The notes under the pieces: generated by a model | Database searches by the model: none | What the model saw: the letters and a program-made list of their open reading frames with translations, nothing else | What the model was told of the DNA's origin: nothing | Translations under genes and position numbers: made by a program | NCBI RefSeq assembly: GCF_006345805.1 | Contig: NC_043010.1 | Span: 61,256,001-61,320,000 of the forward strand | Source of the DNA: Octopus sinensis | Taxonomy: Eukaryota | Direction of reading: 5' to 3' | DNA: 64,000 nucleotides | Shown: positions 5,792-62,734 of the stretch, one piece after another | Layout of the letters: each line of letters starts with the position of its first letter | Numbering within the stretch: the first letter of the stretch is position 1

Positions 5792-6430
5792 CTGCAGCAG
5801 AAGAGAAATTTTCAAATAGGGATGCAGGCCTCCACAGCAACTGGAAATGAGGAACCAGTAACAGTTAAGAAGAAAATAATCGAAAATGGTTTTTATTGTG
5901 ATGTGTGTGAGAAGGTGTTTTCATCTAGGGCCCATGCGAGGACCCATAAACCGGCGCACTTGTTCCTTCGAAAGTTGAAGTGTAGTCATTGTGCAAAACG
6001 TTTCTATCAAACGCATCACCTGAAAAAGCACGAAGCGACCCATTCGTCTGCCCGTCCATATGCTTGTGAGATTTGTAAGAGAGCCTTCAAGGTGGAGTCG
6101 AATATGAAGCTTCATATGGCTGTACATACGAGGGAGGCCAGCCACGAGTGCCCTGACTGTGGTTTTAAGTTCCATCAAGCTGGAGCTTTGACGCGTCATT
6201 ATAGGAGCATTCACCTACGTCAACAGTTTTACGAATGTAATGTCTGTAAAACGAAGTTCAATCGGAAAGAAACACTTCGTTCCCATTTGGATTCTCATAG
6301 GATAGATAATCCATTTAGCTGCAAGCCGTGTGGCATGTTGTTCCCCGATAACAGTCAGTTGGTGAAACACACGAAAGCCCATCACCTCGTCATCAAAGTT
6401 CCGAAATCATCTCAGTCACAACAAAGCTAG
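5792..6430 (+). CDS. C2H2 zinc-finger protein ZNF-1 (6 fingers), terminal coding exon
   Basis: The ORF 5822-6430 encodes six C-x2-C-x12-H-x3/4-H motifs (FYCDVC, LKCSHC, YACEIC, HECPDC, YECNVC, FSCKPC). A TTGGCTTTCAG acceptor ends at 5791 with the frame open from 5792. AATAAA at 6480-6485. Confidence 0.9.
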   Translation: MQQKRNFQIGMQASTATGNEEPVTVKKKIIENGFYCDVCEKVFSSRAHARTHKPAHLFLRKLKCSHCAKRFYQTHHLKKHEATHSSARPYACEICKRAFKVESNMKLHMAVHTREASHECPDCGFKFHQAGALTRHYRSIHLRQQFYECNVCKTKFNRKETLRSHLDSHRIDNPFSCKPCGMLFPDNSQLVKHTKAHHLVIKVPKSSQSQQS

Positions 6431-18985: not shown

Positions 18986-20968
18986 CTAGGTCAACTCTTT
19001 TTGTCGTACAGATGGGATAGGGTTAGGGGGTTTAGGCCACGTAGGGCTCCATCCTGAAGACACTGGGAAACCCCTGGGCCAACTGTAACTGTTGTCCCAG
19101 TGGGATGACATTTGATGGATGTAAGAGGATGACATCTGCATTGGTGTGTTGGAGGTTAAGTGGGACTGAGTCTGCTGATGGGACCCGCTGGATCGCGGAG
19201 AAAGGGATGATGATGGATGGCTGTTGGGGTCCCTGTGGTGCTTGTCCGCATTATTAGAAGAGGCAGATTGATTCGTGGAGTTGGTGTTGCTGCTGCTGCC
19301 TCGATTATGAGATGAATGGGAGTTAGACTTGGAAGGTGGAGTATCGGAGTCATGCTGAGTCAAGGACGTGGCAGAGTAGGTCTTGTCTCCTGGGGTGTTG
19401 CTGCCGCTGCCACCACCACCGCCGCCGCCGCCACCTGCCCCGGCGCCAGGTGAAACAGAAGACCCAGACGGTGGCTGAATGCTACTGGAGGAAGTACCAT
19501 CATAGCTGTAGAGCTTTTCATTATTATTACTGTTGCCAACAGAAGAGACATGACTTCGTTCATGGCTCTTCAAATCTGCTTGGTGAGAGAAAGACTTCCT
19601 ACAAATGGTGCAGTGGAATATGTTCGATGATGACCCTGAAGTGCGGGACACCATTCCGGGGGTGTTCTCCGACATTGAGACTGGTGGAACCACGACCTCT
19701 CCAACGTGAGTCTTCTCATGATTCAGCAATGTAGTTTGGTGTGTGAAAGATTTCTGACATATTGAGCACGTGAAGGGCTTCTCGCCCGTGTGGGTCCGTT
19801 CGTGGTTCTTCAGTGTGGTTTGATGTGCAAATGTCTTCAAGCAGGTTGTGCAATGATAAGGTTTCTCCCCTGTGTGAACACGTTCGTGATTCAACAGAGA
19901 TGTTTGATGGGCAAATGATTTCATGCAGATCGAACATTTGTAAGCCTTTTCAGGTGAATGGCATTGCTCATGGTTTTTCAAGGTGGTTTGATGGGTGAAG
20001 CTTTTCTCGCACTGGCTGCATTTGTACAAACGTTCGCCCGTGTGGATTCGTTCATGAATTGTCAGTGTTGTCTGATGGGAAAAAATTTTGTCACAAACTG
20101 AACACTTATAAGGTTTTTCGCCAGTGTGTACCCGCTGATGGTTAATAAGGGTGGTTTGATGAGCGAACGTCTTCAGACACGTCGGGCAATGATAGGTTTT
20201 CTCCCCGGTGTGAATACGTTGATGGTTGATCAGCGTGGTCTGGTGAGCGAACGCTTTCATACAGATCGAACACTTGAATGGTTTCTCCCCGGTGTGTGTT
20301 CTCGCATGGTTTATAAGCGTAGTCTGATGAGCAAAATTTTTATTGCAGATCGAACACCGATACGGTTTCTCACCAGTATGAATGCGCTGGTGGTTGACCA
20401 GCGTTGTCTGGTGAGCAAACGTCTTGCTGCAGATTGCACAGTTGTAGGGTTTCGCACCAGTATGAACTCGTTCATGGTTTTGTAGAATGGTCTGATGGCT
20501 GAAAGACCTTTCACACATTGAACACTTGAAGGGTTTCTCTCCAGTGTGAACGCGTTCGTGTATCCGCAGATAATCTCGCTGGCTGAATGCCTTTGTACAA
20601 TATTCACAACTGAAGTGGGTCTGACTCAAACCTGCAGCAGACGCACGTTCGTGGTTCGTTAAATTAGCCATTCTTGAAAACCCCTTCCGACAAATATCAC
20701 ATCGATATGGTTTCTTATGGGCCAAACTATGCTGAATGGTCATCTGTCTGTGATGATGATGCTGGTAGGAATTGTTCATAAAACTTATACTGTTGGTAAT
20801 TCCTGTATTGGTTGATGATGTAATCCCTGTATTGGATGATGGCGTACTGGTAGGTGGGGTCTCTGTCTCGGGCTCCGAAGTGGGAGGGTAATTTTTACCA
20901 CCATTGAAATCAAAGGTTCCAAAAAACTGTTTCCCCATTGGGGTGTATACAGACTGTACGGAATACAT
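18986..20968 (-). CDS. C2H2 zinc-finger protein ZNF-2 (660 aa; 12 canonical fingers plus 1 lacking the last His; S/G-rich C-terminus)
   Basis: Uninterrupted ORF with tandem TGEKP-linked fingers. An upstream acceptor TTATTTTAG ends at 21158, and an in-frame stop precedes the ATG. Confidence 0.95.
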   Translation of the reverse strand: MYSVQSVYTPMGKQFFGTFDFNGGKNYPPTSEPETETPPTSTPSSNTGITSSTNTGITNSISFMNNSYQHHHHRQMTIQHSLAHKKPYRCDICRKGFSRMANLTNHERASAAGLSQTHFSCEYCTKAFSQRDYLRIHERVHTGEKPFKCSMCERSFSHQTILQNHERVHTGAKPYNCAICSKTFAHQTTLVNHQRIHTGEKPYRCSICNKNFAHQTTLINHARTHTGEKPFKCSICMKAFAHQTTLINHQRIHTGEKTYHCPTCLKTFAHQTTLINHQRVHTGEKPYKCSVCDKIFSHQTTLTIHERIHTGERLYKCSQCEKSFTHQTTLKNHEQCHSPEKAYKCSICMKSFAHQTSLLNHERVHTGEKPYHCTTCLKTFAHQTTLKNHERTHTGEKPFTCSICQKSFTHQTTLLNHEKTHVGEVVVPPVSMSENTPGMVSRTSGSSSNIFHCTICRKSFSHQADLKSHERSHVSSVGNSNNNEKLYSYDGTSSSSIQPPSGSSVSPGAGAGGGGGGGGGSGSNTPGDKTYSATSLTQHDSDTPPSKSNSHSSHNRGSSSNTNSTNQSASSNNADKHHRDPNSHPSSSLSPRSSGSHQQTQSHLTSNTPMQMSSSYIHQMSSHWDNSYSWPRGFPVSSGWSPTWPKPPNPIPSVRQKELT

Positions 20969-22462: not shown

Positions 22463-22724
22463 GAGTCGCCTGAACTAGTAAAAAAGATGTCACTTCCCAG
22501 AGCACAGCTGCCATCAAAGTGCTTATAGATGTATTGTGGTCCATCATTTTGTTTTTCAGCAGAAAGCATTTATGCACATTTGTGAAATATTGGCTGTCAA
22601 TTTTTATGAGTTTGCTCAAAAAATATTTTAATATCAAAAAAACCTGATTTCACTGGATGCCCCATCCTCTGTATCTATTAAGACTGTTTTCAGTTTTGAT
22701 GATATGGGTATACTAGTAATATGA

Positions 22725-23352
22725 TATTAATGATTTCAAATTTTGGTACAAGGCCAGCAATTTTGGGAGGGGTCAAGTTGATTGCATTGACCCCAGTACA
22801 CAACTGGTACTTATTTTATTAACCCTAAAAGGATGAAAGGCAAAATCAACCTCAGCAGAATTTGAACTCAGAACATGAGGACAGACAAAATGCCGATTAA
22901 GCATTTTTTGCTCAGACTGCGAACAATTCTGCCAGCTTGCTGCCTTAATAATAATAATAATAATAATAATAATCCTTTCTACTACAGGCACACGGTCCAA
23001 AATTTTGGGAGAGGGGTTAAGTTGATTACATCAACCTCAGGACTAAACTGGTCCTCATCAACTCCAAGAGGATGAAAGGCAAAGTCGACCTTGGCAGAAT
23101 TTGAACTCAGAACATAAAGATGGACAAAATACCAATTTCTTTACTACCCACAAGGGGCTAAACACAGAGAGGACAAACAAGGACAGACAAACGGATTAAG
23201 TTGATTATATTGACCCCAGAGCGTAACTGGTACTTATTTAATCGAGCCCAAAAGGATGAAAGGCAAAGTCGACCTCGGTGGAATTTGAACTCAGAACGTA
23301 ACGGCAGACAAAATACCACTAAGCATTTTGCCTGGTGTGCTCACGATTCCAA
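22725..23352 (-). mobile_element. Three head-to-tail SINE family B copies
   Basis: Three occurrences of the block ...ACTGGT...CCC.AAAGGATGAAAGGCAAAGTCGACCT..G.AGAATTTGAACTCAGAAC, homologous to the intact plus-strand copy at 36857-37092. Confidence 0.8.
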
Positions 23353-23384
23353 TAGTTCATTGCCATAAATAATAATAATAATAA

Positions 23385-24238: not shown

Positions 24239-25251
24239 TACCACCACCACTACTACTACTACTAATAATAATAATAGCTTCCAATTTTGAGACACGCCAT
24301 CGATTTTAGAATCGAGGTCAGTCAGTTACACTGATTCCATCCATCACCCTGGGACTAAACTAGTATTCATTTCATCAACCCCAAAATGATGAAAAGCAAA
24401 GTCAACTTCAGTGGAATTTGAACTCAGGAGCCAGAAGAGATTCCACGAAGCATTTTTACCCAATTCACTAAGGATTCTTCAAGTTCCTTACCTAAACTAT
24501 AATAATATGCATGACAAACACACACATTCGATATGTATATTATTGATCATCATCATCATTTTAATGTCCACTTTTCCATGGGTCAGACAGAATCTGCTGA
24601 GGTAGATTTTCTACAGCCAGATGACCTCCCAGCCATATTAACCCATACTTGTATCACATTCTTCCCCCCACCCCTAATACCCTTATGATACAACATTGCA
24701 CTCCAGACTACAGTATCGCGTAATTTGCCCTTCACTCAGGGAAAGAGAATGCAACTAGTAAAGACAATATTTCCCTGATCCTTTCCCACAGTATCCTTGC
24801 GCTGGAAAATATACTTTCAGAACACATTTCTCTGATTATTTGGTCCCCTAGGTAACAAGCTACCAACTACTCTTAGGGAGCCATCCTGACTTCTGTACAA
24901 CTGCTACACATGCAGTTCTTGCCTGTGTGTCAGTCTGCCACTGGTCCTTCTATGTCTTGTGCACCCCTAGTTTACTGTGGGTATCTACACACACACACAC
25001 ATTTTCGTAACCTAGATTATCCATATTAACCAGTGTCAAGGCTGCCAACATAAAGAACATGATCACTCTTGCAGAAACAGCAAAGAAGAAGATAAAACTG
25101 CCAACATCAAACAGTTTTCGAAAGAGACGTGGAACAGTTACTCGGCCTATTGATGCAGGTTAAGTTTACACTGTACCAGATTCTGTAAATGGTTGTTGTG
25201 ATATGTAGGGCTGGAACATATACCACCTGACCAGTAATGGACACAGGTCAG

Positions 25252-26467: not shown

Positions 26468-26706
26468 TATATTTATTTCTTTATTGCCCACAGGGGGCTA
26501 AACATAGAGGGGACAAACAAGGACAGACAAAGGGATTAAGTCGATTACATCGACCCCAGTGTGTAACTGGTACTTATTTAATCGGCCCCGAAAAGATGAA
26601 AGGCAAAGTTGACCTTGGCGGAATTTGAACTCAGAACGTAATGACAGATGAAATACCACCAAGCATTTCGCCCGGTGTGCTAACGATTCTGCCAGCTTGC
26701 TGCCTT
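26468..26706 (-). mobile_element. SINE family B
   Basis: Reverse complement of 36857-37092. Confidence 0.8.
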
Positions 26707-28136: not shown

Positions 28137-28272
28137 AGGTGCTGGAGAAAGACGTCTACCACTTGTGTTTGATAATCGCCAGGTGCTGGAGAAAGACGTC
28201 TACCACTTGTGTTTGATAATCGCCAGGTGCTGGAGAAAGACGTCTACCACTTGTGTTTGATAATCGCCAGGT
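28137..28272. repeat. Three perfect tandem copies of a 44-bp unit
   Basis: AGGTGCTGGAGAAAGACGTCTACCACTTGTGTTTGATAATCGCC at 28137, 28181 and 28225, then AGGT; no spacers. Confidence 0.95.
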
Positions 28273-31874: not shown

Positions 31875-32085
31875 CAGTGAGCCGGTAGATCATTTGCATG
31901 CCAGGCACAATGCTTAGCAACATTTCGTCTAAGTTCAAATGCCACTGGGATCATCTTTGCTTTTCATCCTTTCAAGGTCGATAAAATAAGTACTAGTTGA
32001 GCACTAGGGTCAATGCAATTGACTAACCCCAACCCCAGAAACTGCTGGCCTTGTGCCAAAATTTGAAACCAATATTTACACTCAC
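31875..32085 (+). mobile_element. SINE family B, degenerate
   Basis: Contains TTTGCTTTTCATCCTTTCAAGGTCGATAAAATAAGTAC, as in other B copies. Confidence 0.65.
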
Positions 32086-36856: not shown

Positions 36857-37092
36857 AAGGCAGCGAGCTGGCAGAAACGTTAGCATGCCGGGCGAAATGC
36901 TAAGGGGTATTTCGTCTGCTGTTACATTCTGAGTTTAAATTCTGCCGAGGTCGACTTTGGCTTTCATACTTTCGGGGTCGATAAATTAAGTACCAGTTAT
37001 GCACTGGGGTCAATGTAATAGACTTAATCCCTTTGTCTGTCCTTGTTTGTCCCCTCTATGTTTAGCCCCTTGTGGACAATGAAGAAATAAAA
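36857..37092 (+). mobile_element. SINE family B, intact
   Basis: Head GGCAGCGAGCTGGCAGAAACGTTAGC...GAGTTTAAATTC, central AGGTCGACTTTGGCTTTCATACTTTCGGGGTCGATAAATTAAGTACCAG, tail ...AAAGAAATA; at least six related copies in the window. Confidence 0.85.
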
Positions 37093-51727: not shown

Positions 51728-51760
<33 letters not shown>

Positions 51761-51951: not shown

Positions 51952-52236
51952 AGGCGGTGAGCGGGTAGAATCGCCAGCAGACCGGACAAAGTGCTGAGTG
52001 GCATTTCGTCCGTCCTTACGTTCCGAGTTGTTCAAATTCCGCCGAGGTCAACTTCCTCTTTCATCCTTTCGCGGTCGATGAAATAACAACCAGTTGAGGA
52101 GTCGGGGGTCGGTGTAATCGGCAATCCACCTACCCACCCATCCCAAATTTCAGGCTTTGTGCTTATAGTAGAAAAGACTACTATATATAATAAAAGACCA
52201 CTATATAATATAAAAGACTACTATATAATAGAAAGA
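51952..52236 (+). mobile_element. Degenerate SINE family B with a triplicated tail (AAAGACTACTATATA(TA)ATA x3)
   Basis: B-type central block at 52040-52090; three ~21-23-bp repeats at 52172-52236. Confidence 0.65.
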
Positions 52237-53634: not shown

Positions 53635-53836
53635 ATCCGTAACTATGTGAATGTCCAGTGTCCAACCGGACTCTAAGAAATGTCCAACTCTGACATAACA
53701 TCTCAACACATCCACAGGAATTATTTCTCACTGACGTCGATATAAAACTGATCCCCACCAAACCATAAAGCTGGAGAAGTTTCCATCAGTATCCTTGACC
53801 CCCTTTCTCACCACTCCCTCCTTGCCCCAACTCATT
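53635..53836 (+). promoter_or_regulatory. 5'-UTR part of the ZNF-3 terminal exon with three uORFs
   Basis: Acceptor TTTGTCTTTATTACAG ends at 53634. uORFs at 53645-53650 (M*), 53651-53698 (15 aa) and 53680-53745 (21 aa). Confidence 0.6.
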
Positions 53837-56800
53837 ATGGAGACCCCTATGAGCAATGAAAAACTGATGCATGCTGATTTCTATGGTAAACAGTTTTCAC
53901 CAGCCCCAACTTTGCAAACGCAAAGAATAAGCCACATTTGTGACAAATTGATTCATACTGATATGTACGGGGTCAAAGACTTCCCACAAAGGCATAATCT
54001 TTCCATGCAAAGTATTCCTCACATTCTGGATAAACCTCTCTACCATCCAGAATTCGTGCCAAGGCATCATGGCTTCCAAATGCAGACCATTCCCTCCCAC
54101 ATCCCTGATAAATCGTTCCATCACAGCATGGTTACATATGCGAAAGAGTTCAGTCCAACACAGAACACTCTACCTTCGCCCAAACTGTTGACCCACATGG
54201 TTGACAAGTCCCCTGTTCATTCCACCAGCCCCCTACAGTCTAACAAACAGTTCCTCAGTCCCACACATTCTTCAGTACCACTACAGTCTCCTAAAATGCC
54301 TACAATGATGGACAAGATCTTTCCAGATGGTGGCCTTCTTGACAGTAGTGTGAGTGATGGTAAACAGTATTCTCACCCTCACAGATTGCAGTCGCCTATG
54401 GAGAAGAGTTACCATAGCAACGAGTCACATAGGAACAGCCCGTTGCCATGTGACAAGCAGCTGTCACACCAACTTGACCTGCAGTCTTCATCAAAGCTGA
54501 GCCCAGTGATGGCGAAACAATACTCTGACCCGATGCTTTACCACAAGTCTTTCTTGACGGAGAGTAGCCATCTTTCAGAGGCAAGCCGTAACCAATGCCA
54601 GGAGAACTGCCATGGCCACACTGTTGCCGGGGGTAACAACAGTGGGGGCAGCCATGGGTTACACACTCATAAAACTACTTCCGGTATGTCTGACAAAGCA
54701 TACCACCATCAACAACAACATCATCATCATAGCAGTGGCAGAAGCAGCAGCAGCAGCAGTAGTAGTAACAGTGGTAACACCCCCTCGTATATTCCGTCAG
54801 ATCACACCAACCCCTCTACACCGAAGCCCCCGGACAAGATGTACCCCCAGCACGGATCAGTGAGCATGTCTCCGAAGCTTTACTCTCCGAACCACCACAG
54901 CAATATGCAGCCACAGAAAAGCTACCTTCACAATATCATCACCAGCAGCAGTAGTAGTGGTAGTGGTAGTAGTAGTAGCAATAGTAGTAGTGGTGGTGGT
55001 GGTGGTGGTGGTGGCGGTGGTGGTGGCGATGGTGGTGGTGGTAGGGGTATGAACTGCAGTAATTCCATAACTCCTCCGACCATTACCTCTCCTAGTAGTG
55101 CCAGTGTCCCCAGCAGCAGTCCGGCCCCTTTGAGGACCGACAGCATTGTTGCTAAGCAACCCTACGAAAGCAGCATCCATGATGAACAACAGCAACAACA
55201 ACAACAGCAGCAGAAACATCACAAGCAACATCAGCATAAGCAACACCAACACAAACAACATCGACACAAGCATCACAACAAGCATCATCATCAACAACAA
55301 CAGCCTCAGCTACAACAACAACAACAAATACATGTACAACAGCAACAGCAACAACAGATTCAGGCACAACAACAAATACATGTACAACAGCAACTGCAAC
55401 AACAGCAACAGCTTCAGACGCAGCAACAACTCCAGGTGCAGCAGCTGCAAATGCAACAACAACAACAGCTGCAAGCACAACAAATACAACAACAACAGCA
55501 ACTTCAAGTTCAACAACAACTCCAAACACAACAGCAGCAGCAGCAGCAACAACAACTACAAGCACAGCAACAACAACAGTTGCAGGCTCAGCAGCAGCAA
55601 CAACAATTGCAAGCACAACAACAACAACAGAGGCAGCTGCAAGCGCAGCAACAACAGCTGCAAGATGAACAACATTCACCACAGCAAACACAGAAAGCGC
55701 ATGATCGCCATCAACACAAGCATCATCATCACCATCCACAACAACAACAACAACAGAAATCTCAGCAGGATCTACAAGAACAACAACAAGAACCGCAACC
55801 ACAACAACAACAATACAGCAGTCTACAGAACGAAACCTCAAAATGTTACTCGCAGAACAGCGATTCCCAAGAACAAAGGGAAGACAGCAGCCCTCCAAAA
55901 CAATCTCCCCACTTGCACCACCATCACCACCACCACCATCATCAACAGCACCATCACATTCATCATCACCATCATCATCACCATCTTCAAAACCTATCTG
56001 GGGGCTCCCTCCAGTCGGTAGGAGACACAAACCTAGATCTGAAAGATGTTACCAAAGAAGACCCTTGTGAGAAACCCTATGATTCTTTAACCTGTCAAAT
56101 GACGAACCCCCAGAATTGTTCCGAATCTCTTGAGAAGCTCTACAACATGGATAACGAAGTCAATGAGAAGCCTTCGTTGACGTTACTCGAAGGTACCGAC
56201 CAGATGTTGATGGTAGACGACAAGAAGCCGCTGCAGTCTATGTTGAACAATGAGATGGCTGGTACTGACAGGCCATCTTCATCCTCAGTGAATGCGCAGC
56301 GTTATCACTGTGACTTTTGTGGAAAACAGTTTGCACAAAAGTATGTGCTGCAGATGCACAGACGAACGCATACAGGGGAGAAACCGTTCCAATGCGATTT
56401 CTGCATTCAGCGGTTTGCTCGTAAGGACACGTTACAAATCCATCGAAGAATCCACACCGGTGAGACACCGTTCCAGTGTGACAAGTGCCCTAAACAATTT
56501 GCTCAGGCAGGGAAACTTCAGAAACACAAAAAGCGTTGCCATAACGGCCAGGCCAATTCTGTGACGGGCAACACTCAGAAGTCATTAACGCCTCGGTCAC
56601 AGAATCCAAAGAAAAGAATCTCCGTCACATGTGACATTTGTTTGAAACAGTTTGCTCATCGAGATTACTTAACGATCCATAAAAGGTCACACACTGGAGA
56701 GCGACCGTTTGGGTGTGAATTCTGCCCACAGCGGTTCACTCGCAGGGACATGTTGCAAGTCCACCGTCGGACTCACACTGGAGAGAAGCCTTTTGAGTGT

Positions 56801-57412
56801 CCCATTTGTTTCAAGCGTTTTGCACAGAGAGATAAGCTGCACATACACTCGAGGGTGCATTCAGGGGAGAAACCTTATAAATGTCAGTTGTGTTCGAAAC
56901 AGTTTTCTCAGCGTAACACCCTGGTTGGCCACTTAAGGTCGCACTCGGGAGATCGGCCATATCAGTGTGAAGTATGTTTGCGGAGGTTTGCCCAAAGGGA
57001 TTACTTACGGGTACACACACGATCCCACACTGGGGAGAAACCCTACGGATGTGATTTCTGCATCCAGCGCTTCTCTCGCAGGGACACATTGCAAATTCAC
57101 CGCCGTATTCACACCGGGGAGAAGCCATTCCGTTGTAACTTCTGTGGCAAAGAGTTTGCTCAGACAGACAAGTTGCGACGACACAAACGAACTCATCCCG
57201 AGTTGAAACAAGAGATCAATGCTGGTAACAACAACAACAAAGCCAACAATGGCAACACTGCAGCTGCAACTGGCAACTACGATAGCGCGGCAGCAGCTGC
57301 AGTCGCTGCAATTACAAGTGGCGTAGACAGCGACGGCAGTAAACCTATGTTGGTCCCAGTAAAGACTATTGATGAGTATTTACCTGTAAATAACTATTTG
57401 TGGCTGTTGTAA
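53837..57412 (+). CDS. C2H2 zinc-finger protein ZNF-3 (~1190 aa; 10 fingers; long polyQ/polyH/polyS/polyG region)
   Basis: Single open frame whose first ATG is at 53837 (the ORF track starts at TTG 53795). Ten C2H2 motifs at 56303-57196; Q-rich tract at ~55187-55813. Confidence 0.95.
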   Translation: METPMSNEKLMHADFYGKQFSPAPTLQTQRISHICDKLIHTDMYGVKDFPQRHNLSMQSIPHILDKPLYHPEFVPRHHGFQMQTIPSHIPDKSFHHSMVTYAKEFSPTQNTLPSPKLLTHMVDKSPVHSTSPLQSNKQFLSPTHSSVPLQSPKMPTMMDKIFPDGGLLDSSVSDGKQYSHPHRLQSPMEKSYHSNESHRNSPLPCDKQLSHQLDLQSSSKLSPVMAKQYSDPMLYHKSFLTESSHLSEASRNQCQENCHGHTVAGGNNSGGSHGLHTHKTTSGMSDKAYHHQQQHHHHSSGRSSSSSSSSNSGNTPSYIPSDHTNPSTPKPPDKMYPQHGSVSMSPKLYSPNHHSNMQPQKSYLHNIITSSSSSGSGSSSSNSSSGGGGGGGGGGGGDGGGGRGMNCSNSITPPTITSPSSASVPSSSPAPLRTDSIVAKQPYESSIHDEQQQQQQQQQKHHKQHQHKQHQHKQHRHKHHNKHHHQQQQPQLQQQQQIHVQQQQQQQIQAQQQIHVQQQLQQQQQLQTQQQLQVQQLQMQQQQQLQAQQIQQQQQLQVQQQLQTQQQQQQQQQLQAQQQQQLQAQQQQQQLQAQQQQQRQLQAQQQQLQDEQHSPQQTQKAHDRHQHKHHHHHPQQQQQQKSQQDLQEQQQEPQPQQQQYSSLQNETSKCYSQNSDSQEQREDSSPPKQSPHLHHHHHHHHHQQHHHIHHHHHHHHLQNLSGGSLQSVGDTNLDLKDVTKEDPCEKPYDSLTCQMTNPQNCSESLEKLYNMDNEVNEKPSLTLLEGTDQMLMVDDKKPLQSMLNNEMAGTDRPSSSSVNAQRYHCDFCGKQFAQKYVLQMHRRTHTGEKPFQCDFCIQRFARKDTLQIHRRIHTGETPFQCDKCPKQFAQAGKLQKHKKRCHNGQANSVTGNTQKSLTPRSQNPKKRISVTCDICLKQFAHRDYLTIHKRSHTGERPFGCEFCPQRFTRRDMLQVHRRTHTGEKPFECPICFKRFAQRDKLHIHSRVHSGEKPYKCQLCSKQFSQRNTLVGHLRSHSGDRPYQCEVCLRRFAQRDYLRVHTRSHTGEKPYGCDFCIQRFSRRDTLQIHRRIHTGEKPFRCNFCGKEFAQTDKLRRHKRTHPELKQEINAGNNNNKANNGNTAAATGNYDSAAAAAVAAITSGVDSDGSKPMLVPVKTIDEYLPVNNYLWLL

Positions 57413-61797: not shown

Positions 61798-62734
61798 TTC
61801 TAAATTAAACACTAATTTACTTACATAATTAAAATCAAATACAACCACCTGTTCATTAGCAGAAGCGATACAAGTTTTTTAACACTACTGTGTGTGGCAG
61901 TGGTCAACTATTCTGGTGGACATTGGAGTTTGAAGTTGCTGCTTTGATATTGATGCAGATCATAAAAGGCATCCGGAAAATCAGTGGTATACCTGTATGG
62001 ACTCATATACACTGCATTGTACGTGTAATATATATATATATATATGTATGTATACACACACACACACACACTTTCATTCATGGACATATACTATATGAAT
62101 TATTATATGTAGCACACACTCCTCTTTCTCTCCCCCATCTCTCTCTCTCTCTCAATATATATATATATACACACACACACACACGTATATACATGTATGT
62201 GCTGCATAGACACACTAAATTTTATTTTATGTGCTCCATATATTCATTGTGTGTGTATATATTGCATACATTTATGTATCTGCTGTGTAATATACAAGAT
62301 ATGTTTTTATAAATATATATATACCCAACATGTTTGTGTTGTGTGTGTGTGTGTGTGTCACATGCCATCAAATGATATCTCAGGGGTCATAATGCTATAT
62401 TCATATATACGCATACATTAAACACACAAAACTTTTACATATACACCCACTCGCATCCACACACTCTTAGTTTCACACAAACACACACACACAATTTAAT
62501 ACTGTTTACAGCTTTTTGTTTGTTTGTTTTTTTCTTTCTTCTACTAAAGCTGATATCTCCCTAAGGGATTTTATAGTAACTAACCCCTGCCTGCCTCTGG
62601 TAGACAAGGATGTTATCAGCTTGCATTATGGGTAATTTTCAGACCTTGATATAAATCAGTTTCTAAAAATTACATAACCCTACATTCTAAGGTTATCCTA
62701 TAGTAGTAGTAGTAATAATAATAATAATAATAAT

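Follow-up and report, generated by a model that had tools for sequence, protein, structure and literature searches.

Ten ancient zinc fingers with one conserved recognition helix in an Octopus sinensis C2H2 gene

We analyzed a 64,000-nucleotide stretch of Octopus sinensis DNA (contig NC_043010.1, positions 61,256,001 to 61,320,000; hereafter the window) which carries a Krüppel-type C2H2 zinc finger gene on its reverse strand at 18986..20968, and found that the ten central fingers of the encoded protein share one recognition helix, H-Q-T-T-L-x-N. The open reading frame (ORF) is a functional, selectively maintained gene of Octopus, and the ten fingers are ancient duplicates whose contact residues, together with a glutamine at helix position +1, have been held by purifying selection. 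The reading which we favor as a whole, and to which we give about an even chance, is that this is a selected gene of a coleoid family whose ancient uniform array would act as a homotypic reader of nucleic acid with a three-nucleotide period.

The ten-finger array and its age

Translation and a regular-expression parse (C-x2-C-x12-H-x3-H) placed ten consecutive fingers at 19706..20530 on the reverse strand (amino acids 147-421). The original prediction, made from the DNA letters, had given these coordinates and a set of residue counts, all of which were reproduced: the residues at -1, +1 and +2 are His, Gln and Thr in 10/10 fingers, Thr occupies +3 in 8/10 and Asn occupies +6 in 9/10. Read from -1 to +6 the helices are HQTILQN, HQTTLVN, HQTTLIN (three times), HQTTLTI, HQTTLKN, HQTSLLN, HQTTLKN and HQTTLLN. 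Parsing of the complete 660-residue protein gave 12 canonical fingers and one degenerate finger, and the numbering of the array as fingers 3-12 is right when the degenerate finger at residues 88-118 is counted as finger 1. The uniform residues are encoded by mixed codons across the ten units (His, CAT7/CAC3; Gln, CAG5/CAA5; Thr at +2, ACC5/ACA3/ACT2; Thr at +3, ACG3/ACA3/ACC2; Leu at +4, four different codons), which agrees with the earlier statement that synonymous codons at the helix residues had diverged.

The array repeats with a regular period of 28 residues. All nine of its linkers are five residues long (TGEKP in five, the others TGAKP, TGEKT, TGERL and SPEKA), a K/R lies two residues before the conserved Phe in 10/10 fingers and an R/K is present at the H-x-R position in 9/10. 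Judged by these residues the DNA-binding scaffold of the array is intact, and its best sequence matches in the PDB were DNA-bound ZFP568 (5v3j/5v3m) and Aart. A Pfam scan of the whole protein (E <= 0.01) returned only finger-type models and weak spurious matches; PF00096 scored 167.8 bits (cut-off 25.2) and PF13465 244.6 bits (cut-off 40), while KRAB (PF01352), SCAN, BTB and SET were absent. The RNA-type finger models zf-C2H2_jaz and zf-met also exceeded their cut-offs, which we regard as generic cross-matching, and the PF12171 match (101 bits) overlaps ordinary C2H2 matches. By its spacing, five-residue linkers and Pfam scores the protein is thus a Krüppel-type C2H2 protein and not a KRAB-ZFP. 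The earlier label "KRAB-less" was correct to that extent, but it should not be taken to mean effector-less: motifs at both the N and C termini are conserved across the coleoid family described below.

The ten 84-bp units share 52-76% nucleotide identity (mean 62%) and 50-86% protein identity. Compared pairwise (45 pairs), the units are saturated at silent positions, with differences at 135/178 (0.76) of four-fold degenerate sites and at 0.50 of two-fold sites. As a yardstick, paralogues of the same family in O. sinensis were compared with those of other species and gave four-fold differences of 0.005-0.012 against O. vulgaris, 0.06 against O. bimaculoides, 0.41 against Argonauta hians and 0.73 against Sepia pharaonis. 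Because the units differ by 0.76 and the Octopus-Argonauta comparison by 0.41, the unit duplications are much older than the Octopus-Argonauta split, and recent slippage or gene conversion therefore cannot explain the uniform helix.

Nonsynonymous divergence (dN) among the units was 0.07 at positions -1/+2/+3/+6, 0.13 at the zinc ligands and linker and 0.57 in the remaining framework. Framework identity among the ten fingers is 0.46, barely above the 0.33-0.42 found against fingers of other genes in the family. The ratio of variability at the specificity positions to that in the framework was 0.23 in the ten fingers, against an average of 1.68 and a lowest value of 0.87 among 128 poly-finger proteins (the homology-search proteins which passed a stricter C-x2-C/H-x3-H unit parse, with P0122 and P0030 left out), and the pattern in the ten fingers is therefore the reverse of that in the other poly-zinc-finger proteins. 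Unit divergence, silent saturation, the dN contrast and the variability ratio all favor the earlier argument against recent slippage and for selection on a repeated helix. The alternative history, in which fingers that were already diverged converged on one helix, equally involves selection on the helix.

Such uniformity exceeds chance by far and is rare among the proteins compared. No helix beginning with HQT was present among 2154 fingers of the proteins returned by two homology searches. In those 131 of them that have eight or more fingers, the most frequent signature at -1/2/3/6 accounted for a median of 14% and a maximum of 44% of a protein's fingers. In the present protein the HTTN signature is found in 7/12 fingers and H-Q-T in 10/12.

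Two further observations concern the array. Although +1 is not a canonical base contact, Gln is invariant at this position in all ten array fingers and in finger 13, which lies apart from the array and also begins with H-Q (HQADLKS); other family members vary at +1 (R38/Q28/K14/L10 of 100 fingers). Fingers 5-6 (FKCSICMKAF.., YHCPTCLKTF..) and 9-10 (YKCSICMKSF.., YHCTTCLKTF..) are mutual closest matches, with nucleotide identities of 0.75 and 0.74 and amino acid identity up to 0.86 (19790-19942 against 20126-20278 of the window, reverse strand), which indicates a probable old duplication of a two-finger block inside the array.

The gene as a whole is under strong constraint. Its coding sequence, identified from the ORF listing, encodes 660 amino acids with the stop codon at 18986-18988 and lies at approximately 61.27 Mb of chromosome CM016872.1. 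An in-frame stop is found four codons 5' of the ATG and the relatives begin with the same "MY" motif, so that the coding sequence is complete in one exon. O. vulgaris encodes an identical 660-residue product, and the 1980 nucleotides compared between the two species contain 13 differences, all at third positions and all synonymous, with no nonsynonymous change. The proportion of synonymous differences (pS) was 0.030 across 432 synonymous sites, against 0 changes across 1548 nonsynonymous sites, and a 13:0 split has a probability of approximately 2.5e-9 under neutrality. This silent divergence is similar to that of the flanks, where the two species differ by approximately 2.5% substitutions (~0.025) and many indels.

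The coleoid family and the orthologue question

Outside the array, the protein begins with a family motif, MYSVQSVYTPMGKQ (amino acids 1-14; 20927..20968, reverse strand, as are all parts of the protein), which is common to P0030/P0177, P0153, P0154, Sepia_a and L015, the handles by which we refer to individual relatives. By sequence parse, finger 1 (amino acids 88-118; 20615..20707) is degenerate, in that C-x2-C-x12-H is kept and the second His is lost (HERAS), and it is joined by an unusually long spacer to finger 2 (amino acids 119-141; 20546..20614; helix QRDYLRI). The cuttlefish relative has an intact equivalent of finger 1, FRCEICRKTFSRRANLLNHERDH, with the same long spacer. Finger 13 (amino acids 451-473; 19550..19618; helix HQADLKS), also located by parsing, follows the array after a 29-residue spacer. 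Translation of 19124..19549 gives a low-complexity region rich in Ser, Asn and Gly, including a Gly run at 19400-19447, which contains no amino acid change relative to O. vulgaris and six silent changes within residues 495-550. The C-terminal family motif, YIHQMSSHWDNSYSWPRGFPVSSGWSPTWP (amino acids 616-645), was located by alignment A1 at 19034..19123, and a six-frame scan of the window for this motif gave one match, at that same site.

These two terminal motifs define the family. The N-terminal motif has the form "MY..Q..Y..G.Q", and M-[YF]-x-x-Q-x-x-[YF] is found in MYSVQSVYTPMGKQ as in MYPVQTPYT (P0030/P0177), MYSFQPVFPMGNQ (P0153), MYPVQPMYPGSNQ (P0154) and MFPMQPMYPMGKQ (L015). The tail has the form "H.M...WENxYxWxRGFP...W"; the ten-finger protein carries [YL]-x-H-x-M-x3-W-[ED]-N-x-Y-x-W-x-R-G-[FY]-P...W, and in alignment A1 the residues Y, H, W, N, Y, W, R and G are invariant. 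When the A1 tail profile was run against 1.84 billion representatives it gave 13 matches. Nine of them proved on reading to be family members; P0158 was unread, and P0161, P0162 and P0164 were rejected as spurious profile matches to translated tandem repeats. Two Logan-derived proteins likewise have the N-terminus and C-terminal tail of the ten-finger protein with different fingers. A full-length homology search was rejected as a guide to orthology as it was swamped by generic many-finger proteins, and a query without the ten fingers returned P0122 as the only true relative. The relatives go by generic labels, "zinc finger protein 2 homolog" for example, and their named sources are all coleoid: Octopus vulgaris, O. 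sinensis and O. bimaculoides, Argonauta hians and Acanthosepion (Sepia) pharaonis. On the evidence of both motifs the ten-finger gene belongs to an uncharacterized family specific to coleoid cephalopods.

A one-exon coding sequence with the array between the two motifs was found in genomic DNA for the ten-finger gene, Sepia_a, Sepia_b, Sepia_c, P0153, P0163 and P0177. The four O. sinensis family genes that were located all lie on chromosome CM016872.1, at 29.7, 61.3 (the ten-finger gene), 63.65 and 63.77 Mb, and no further family gene was present within 10 kb of P0163, P0153 or P0177. Synteny failed as a route to orthologues, with the family paralogues 2.4 to 32 Mb from the ten-finger gene on the same chromosome. 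Sepia_a and Sepia_b are only approximately 29 kb apart (L010). This arrangement is consistent with an old tandem cluster which was dispersed by intrachromosomal rearrangement.

Low-diversity or periodic helices are, in the sequences compared, a trait of the family. Among 100 fingers of other members, Gln was found at -1 in 82, Asn at +3 in 57 and Asn at +6 in 50, with His at -1 in none, and members differ chiefly at -1/+2/+3, the positions which set DNA specificity. In P0163, five of ten fingers share Q-T-N-N at -1/+2/+3/+6 (helix Q-x-T-N-L-R-N), and the residues at these four positions are kept between Octopus and Sepia in 10/10 fingers. P0153 of O. sinensis (L005 10001-12064) contains a four-finger super-repeat, NQFFLKx-QKINLKN-QRGNLKL-QKINLND, approximately three times, while Sepia_c (L009 8144-10750) contains QKTNLDS-LEINLRN-QQSALRN-QQGTLKA three times, which suggests that the targets of these two proteins may be 12-bp periodic. 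Equivalent fingers of successive P0153 repeats have 86-93% protein and 73-77% DNA identity, and finger pairs of the same helix class differ at 0.62 of four-fold sites with their helices kept.

L015 (58-1506 and 1508-1942; Logan SRR27666067_4531) has ten consecutive Q-[KR]-A-N-L-x-N fingers, with a DNA identity of 0.64 among units, four-fold differences of 0.77 and a variability of 0.10 at the specificity positions against 0.46 in the framework. It is a second, independent case of helix uniformity over ten fingers at saturated silent sites. The tail of L015, WENNYNWSRPF, lies in a different reading frame after a stop; the gene may be truly interrupted there, or the break may come from a frameshift or from faulty assembly.

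Among decapod sequences, the best candidate counterpart of the ten-finger gene, whether orthologue or paralogue, is Sepia_a (Acanthosepion pharaonis CAHIKZ030000917.1, L010 10001-12112), an uninterrupted 703-residue ORF with the family N-terminus and tail. It was the best and only collinear match to residues 1-146 of the octopus protein (92 bits), with which it has in common finger 1, the unusually long spacer that separates this finger from finger 2, and a His-rich stretch; the tail features RGFPV...WSP.W are found in these two proteins only. Sepia_a has nine canonical fingers and one with altered Cys spacing; five are of QRAHL type, and the central helices are largely uniform (QRAHLLS, QRAHLQN, QKAHLTC, QRAHLII, QRVHLAN). 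A finger-by-finger comparison of frameworks gave no one-to-one correspondence. The public model P0156 (CAE1244983.1, 301 residues, spanning 28 kb) keeps the two ends of Sepia_a with the fingers spliced out, and looks mis-modelled.

The expectation that orthologues would retain the helix residues held for O. vulgaris, a very close species, but the closest cuttlefish relative differs (QRAHL). If Sepia_a is the orthologue, uniformity of the array is conserved and identity of the helix is not; conservation of the helix itself is demonstrated within Octopus only (O. vulgaris). When two adjacent HQTT helices were written as a degenerate DNA pattern, it had five matches in the window and zero in JGI metagenomes.

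Predicted target and alternative explanations

Under the favored reading, the array would be a homotypic reader of nucleic acid with a three-nucleotide periodicity, most likely double-stranded simple-sequence DNA. Every finger would present an identical weak, Arg-free contact set, such that a trinucleotide repeat could be engaged in any register by any set of neighboring fingers and longer tracts would be bound more tightly, with the conserved terminal motifs presumed to carry an effector function. Asn at +6 reads adenine, which is established, while the base preference of His at -1 and of Thr at +3 is ambiguous. The engineered helix HRTTLTN was paired with 5'-AGT-3' and QRANLRA with 5'-AAA-3' (PMC7317221 Table 1). 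HQTTLxN is identical to this Barbas-type HRTTLTN at -1, +2, +3, +4 and +6 and differs at +1 (Gln vs Arg) and +5, and the QRANLSN/QKANLxN helices of L015 are identical to QRANLRA at -1, +2, +3 and +4; the specificity of such modules was measured in a Zif268/Sp1C context and not in the octopus framework, so that the match serves as a lead only. By this analogy a plausible unit per finger is 5'-A-N-T/Y-3', which would correspond to approximately 30 bp of (AAT/ATT)n or (ACT/AGT)n, and the prediction is limited to A-N-T/Y because of the ambiguity at -1 and +3. A run of A-N-T triplets also reads as A-N-T on the opposite strand, being of the same form as its own reverse complement. For L015 the predicted unit is AAA per finger, and hence poly(dA). 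The idea of a target with a 3-bp period draws indirect support from the HRTTLTN match and from the uniform or periodic arrays of the relatives, one of which resembles the AAA module.

The original prediction had proposed (TAA)n, (CAT/TGA)n or (CAA)n tracts as targets. The predicted A-N-T/Y unit would fit (TAA)n, would not favor (CAA)n and would fit (CAT)n only if His at -1 reads G. The motif was predicted by analogy with HRTTLTN. No explicit rule for a His at -1 or a Thr at +3 was found in the recognition-code papers searched, and the helix string "HQTTL" was without a match in the literature searched.

Candidate targets are present in the window, and their occupancy by the protein is a hypothesis. 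A-N-T triplets occur in runs of eight or more at four sites, where 0 are expected: (AAT)9 at 22947, (ACT)5(AAT)4 at 24249, (ATT)10 at 51729 and (AGT)4(AAT)8 at 62702. The further claim that trinucleotide tracts form retroposon tails throughout the window was borne out in part, with (AAT)n following an interspersed element in two of approximately five copies. In the intervals 22647-22973, 23198-23382, 26531-26706, 36857-37032, 31928-32074 and 51988-52119, several copies of this element, which resembles a short interspersed element (SINE), end with ...TTCTGCCAGCTTGCTGCCTT; two copies continue into (AAT)9 or (AAT)5. A second element, with an antisense tRNA-like head (CTAACCACTGAGCCATGCGCC), adjoins the (ACT)5(AAT)4 tract at 24249.

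Several points weigh against this reading. The H/T/T/N contact set is without the Arg, Asp or Gln contacts of strong, specific binding, and published codes leave both Thr at +3 and His at -1 ambiguous, which makes the triplet prediction weak. A base-reading model leaves part of the constraint unexplained, since Gln is invariant at +1 although that position does not canonically contact bases. Natural long arrays often use a subset of their fingers only. QRAHL in place of HQTTL in Sepia_a means either that the target changed between lineages or that the genes are paralogous. A helix-only artificial query found no protein sharing three 5-mers in a collection of 5.8 billion clusters, a negative which is informative only for species with a copy outside the window protein's own 90% cluster. 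In the exact-product search, the sequence was matched on two genome assemblies only and on no assembled transcript contig.

The rival which survives best, and which we judge unlikely but deserving of some weight, is that the uniform face is a periodic scaffold for RNA of a repetitive or structured kind, for a partner protein or for a polymer such as poly(ADP-ribose), or serves sequence-independent DNA binding, with selection keeping H-Q-T-T-L-x-N for the interaction in question. It would account for the non-canonical Gln at +1 being as invariant as the base-contact positions and recurring in the isolated finger 13, and for contact residues that are small and polar with no Arg or Asp; the jaz and met models above their cut-offs point the same way, though as generic cross-matches. 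Against it, the linkers are canonical five-residue TGEKP-type linkers, unlike the long linkers of fingers that bind double-stranded RNA, and the phosphate-contact positions are conserved in the array. The uniform helices of relatives moreover match engineered DNA modules (QKANLxN vs QRANLRA for AAA), and family members differ chiefly at the very positions, -1/+2/+3, that set DNA specificity. JAZ/ZNF346 and Xenopus dsRBP-ZFa do resemble the octopus array in having several fingers with very similar helices, but their linkers run to tens of residues and their helices are longer, whereas the octopus protein has the 28-residue Krüppel repeat.

It is also possible, though we consider it quite improbable, that the protein is an ordinary factor in which three to five fingers read a short non-repetitive site and the others are spares for stability, spacing or avidity. 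As is generally known, in many long arrays only some of the fingers touch DNA, and the sequence is silent on which of them bind. A subset of identical fingers would nevertheless still specify a repeated triplet, extreme conservation of the contact residues is seen in 10/10 fingers while silent sites are saturated, and ten-finger uniformity recurs in L015.

That the ORF is decaying or was never expressed, and the pattern functionless, is very unlikely. The exact product was found in neither the protein collection nor transcript-derived contigs, but its absence from the collection is uninformative as no ORF of the window is present there, and the 0 nonsynonymous against 13 synonymous differences from O. 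vulgaris, the intact 660-codon frame and the conserved N- and C-terminal family motifs all argue otherwise. Least credible, to the point of being negligible, is uniformity through recent tandem duplication, slippage, PRDM9-like gene conversion or an assembly artefact: Tandem Repeats Finder did report an 84-bp period (4.4 units, 70% match) and fingers 5-6 and 9-10 resemble an old block duplication, but the silent-site data, in which saturation includes the helix codons and mean unit identity is low, refute recent duplication and gene conversion, and chromosome-level assemblies made independently for two species agree on the sequence.

The array can be set against several known systems. Like the octopus gene, PRDM9 and young KRAB-ZFP genes have long arrays of tandem 84-bp units, but their DNA repeats are near-identical and vary at -1/+3/+6, whereas the octopus units have 62% DNA identity and -1/+2/+3/+6 are their least variable positions; with saturated silent sites and a dN of 0.07 vs 0.57, the octopus array is not a concerted array of the PRDM9 kind. 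ZFP568 has an 11-finger array with canonical linkers like those of octopus, with helices that are all different and a unique site. In its structure the array reportedly follows the major groove over ~27 bp, such that approximately ten contiguous fingers can engage DNA.

Finger chains targeted to poly-CAG reuse one helix. Other engineered microsatellite arrays, for example those directed to GGAA repeats (PMC9374162), likewise have repeated helices, read in any register and gain avidity with repeat length; they are man-made, whereas the octopus array is natural, of approximately ten fingers and selected while silent sites saturated, and its reading of repeats is predicted from sequence. Among natural proteins associated with microsatellites, a few non-identical fingers read one or two repeat units. 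ZNF24 is found at TCAT repeats and CLAMP or GAGA factor at GA repeats, and we know of no natural microsatellite-bound finger protein with ten fingers of one helix. ZSCAN4 was reported at TG/CA microsatellites (PMC10785592).

Other features of the window and significance

The nearest other gene in the window is more than 12 kb from the ten-finger gene. A 1205-residue ORF at 53795-57412 (forward strand) encodes ten fingers together with very long tracts of poly-Gln and of His-rich sequence; many of these fingers have x-R-D-x-L-x-x helices (RKDTLQI, RRDMLQV, RRDTLQI, QRDYLRV, HRDYLTI, QRDKLHI), which finger 2 of the ten-finger gene (QRDYLRI) resembles. The 202-residue ORF at 5822-6430 (forward strand), with six diverse C2H2 fingers, is the third zinc finger gene or exon of the window. 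A perfect 44-bp tandem repeat of 3.1 copies with 100% identity (AGGTGCTGGAGAAAGACGTCTACCACTTGTGTTTGATAATCGCC) lies at 28137-28272, and a very long imperfect (TA)n of approximately 350 units at 1099-1782 yields spurious long ORFs in several frames.

Cephalopods are known for heavy RNA editing. All the conserved helix codons of the array (CAY, CAR, ACN, AAY) can be recoded by adenosine-to-inosine (A-to-I) editing (H>R, Q>R, T>A, N>D/S/G), and editing of this kind could, on codon content, retune the whole array at once.

A wider proposal, which we regard as rather doubtful, is that the coleoid family consists of dedicated readers of simple-sequence DNA, each paralogue tuned to one repeat unit by its helix array. 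Ten HQTTLxN fingers would then read (A-N-T)n, ten QKANLxN fingers poly(dA) and the four-finger super-repeats 12-bp tandem repeats, and many weak identical contacts would make the proteins sensors of repeat length. Acting on retroposon tails and microsatellites through their terminal motifs, they would form a KRAB-independent repeat-chromatin system, whose stability over hundreds of millions of years would follow from the tails lasting longer than any one transposon family.

In the natural arrays of this gene and its family the DNA-reading residues are the most conserved and not the most variable, the opposite of the arms race of vertebrate KRAB zinc fingers, and this points to simple or tandem repeats as targets. 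If true, the array would be the first natural counterpart of engineered repeat-targeting finger chains and a new model for genome marking of microsatellites or retroposon tails; if the protein does not bind DNA, its selected non-canonical face would indicate a non-DNA function for a canonical-looking array. The cephalopod expansion of C2H2 zinc fingers is among the largest outside vertebrates. A 2025 study of these genes left their binding sites, and any link to repeats, open (PMC12513265), and the family described here offers a concrete, testable entry point into that expansion.

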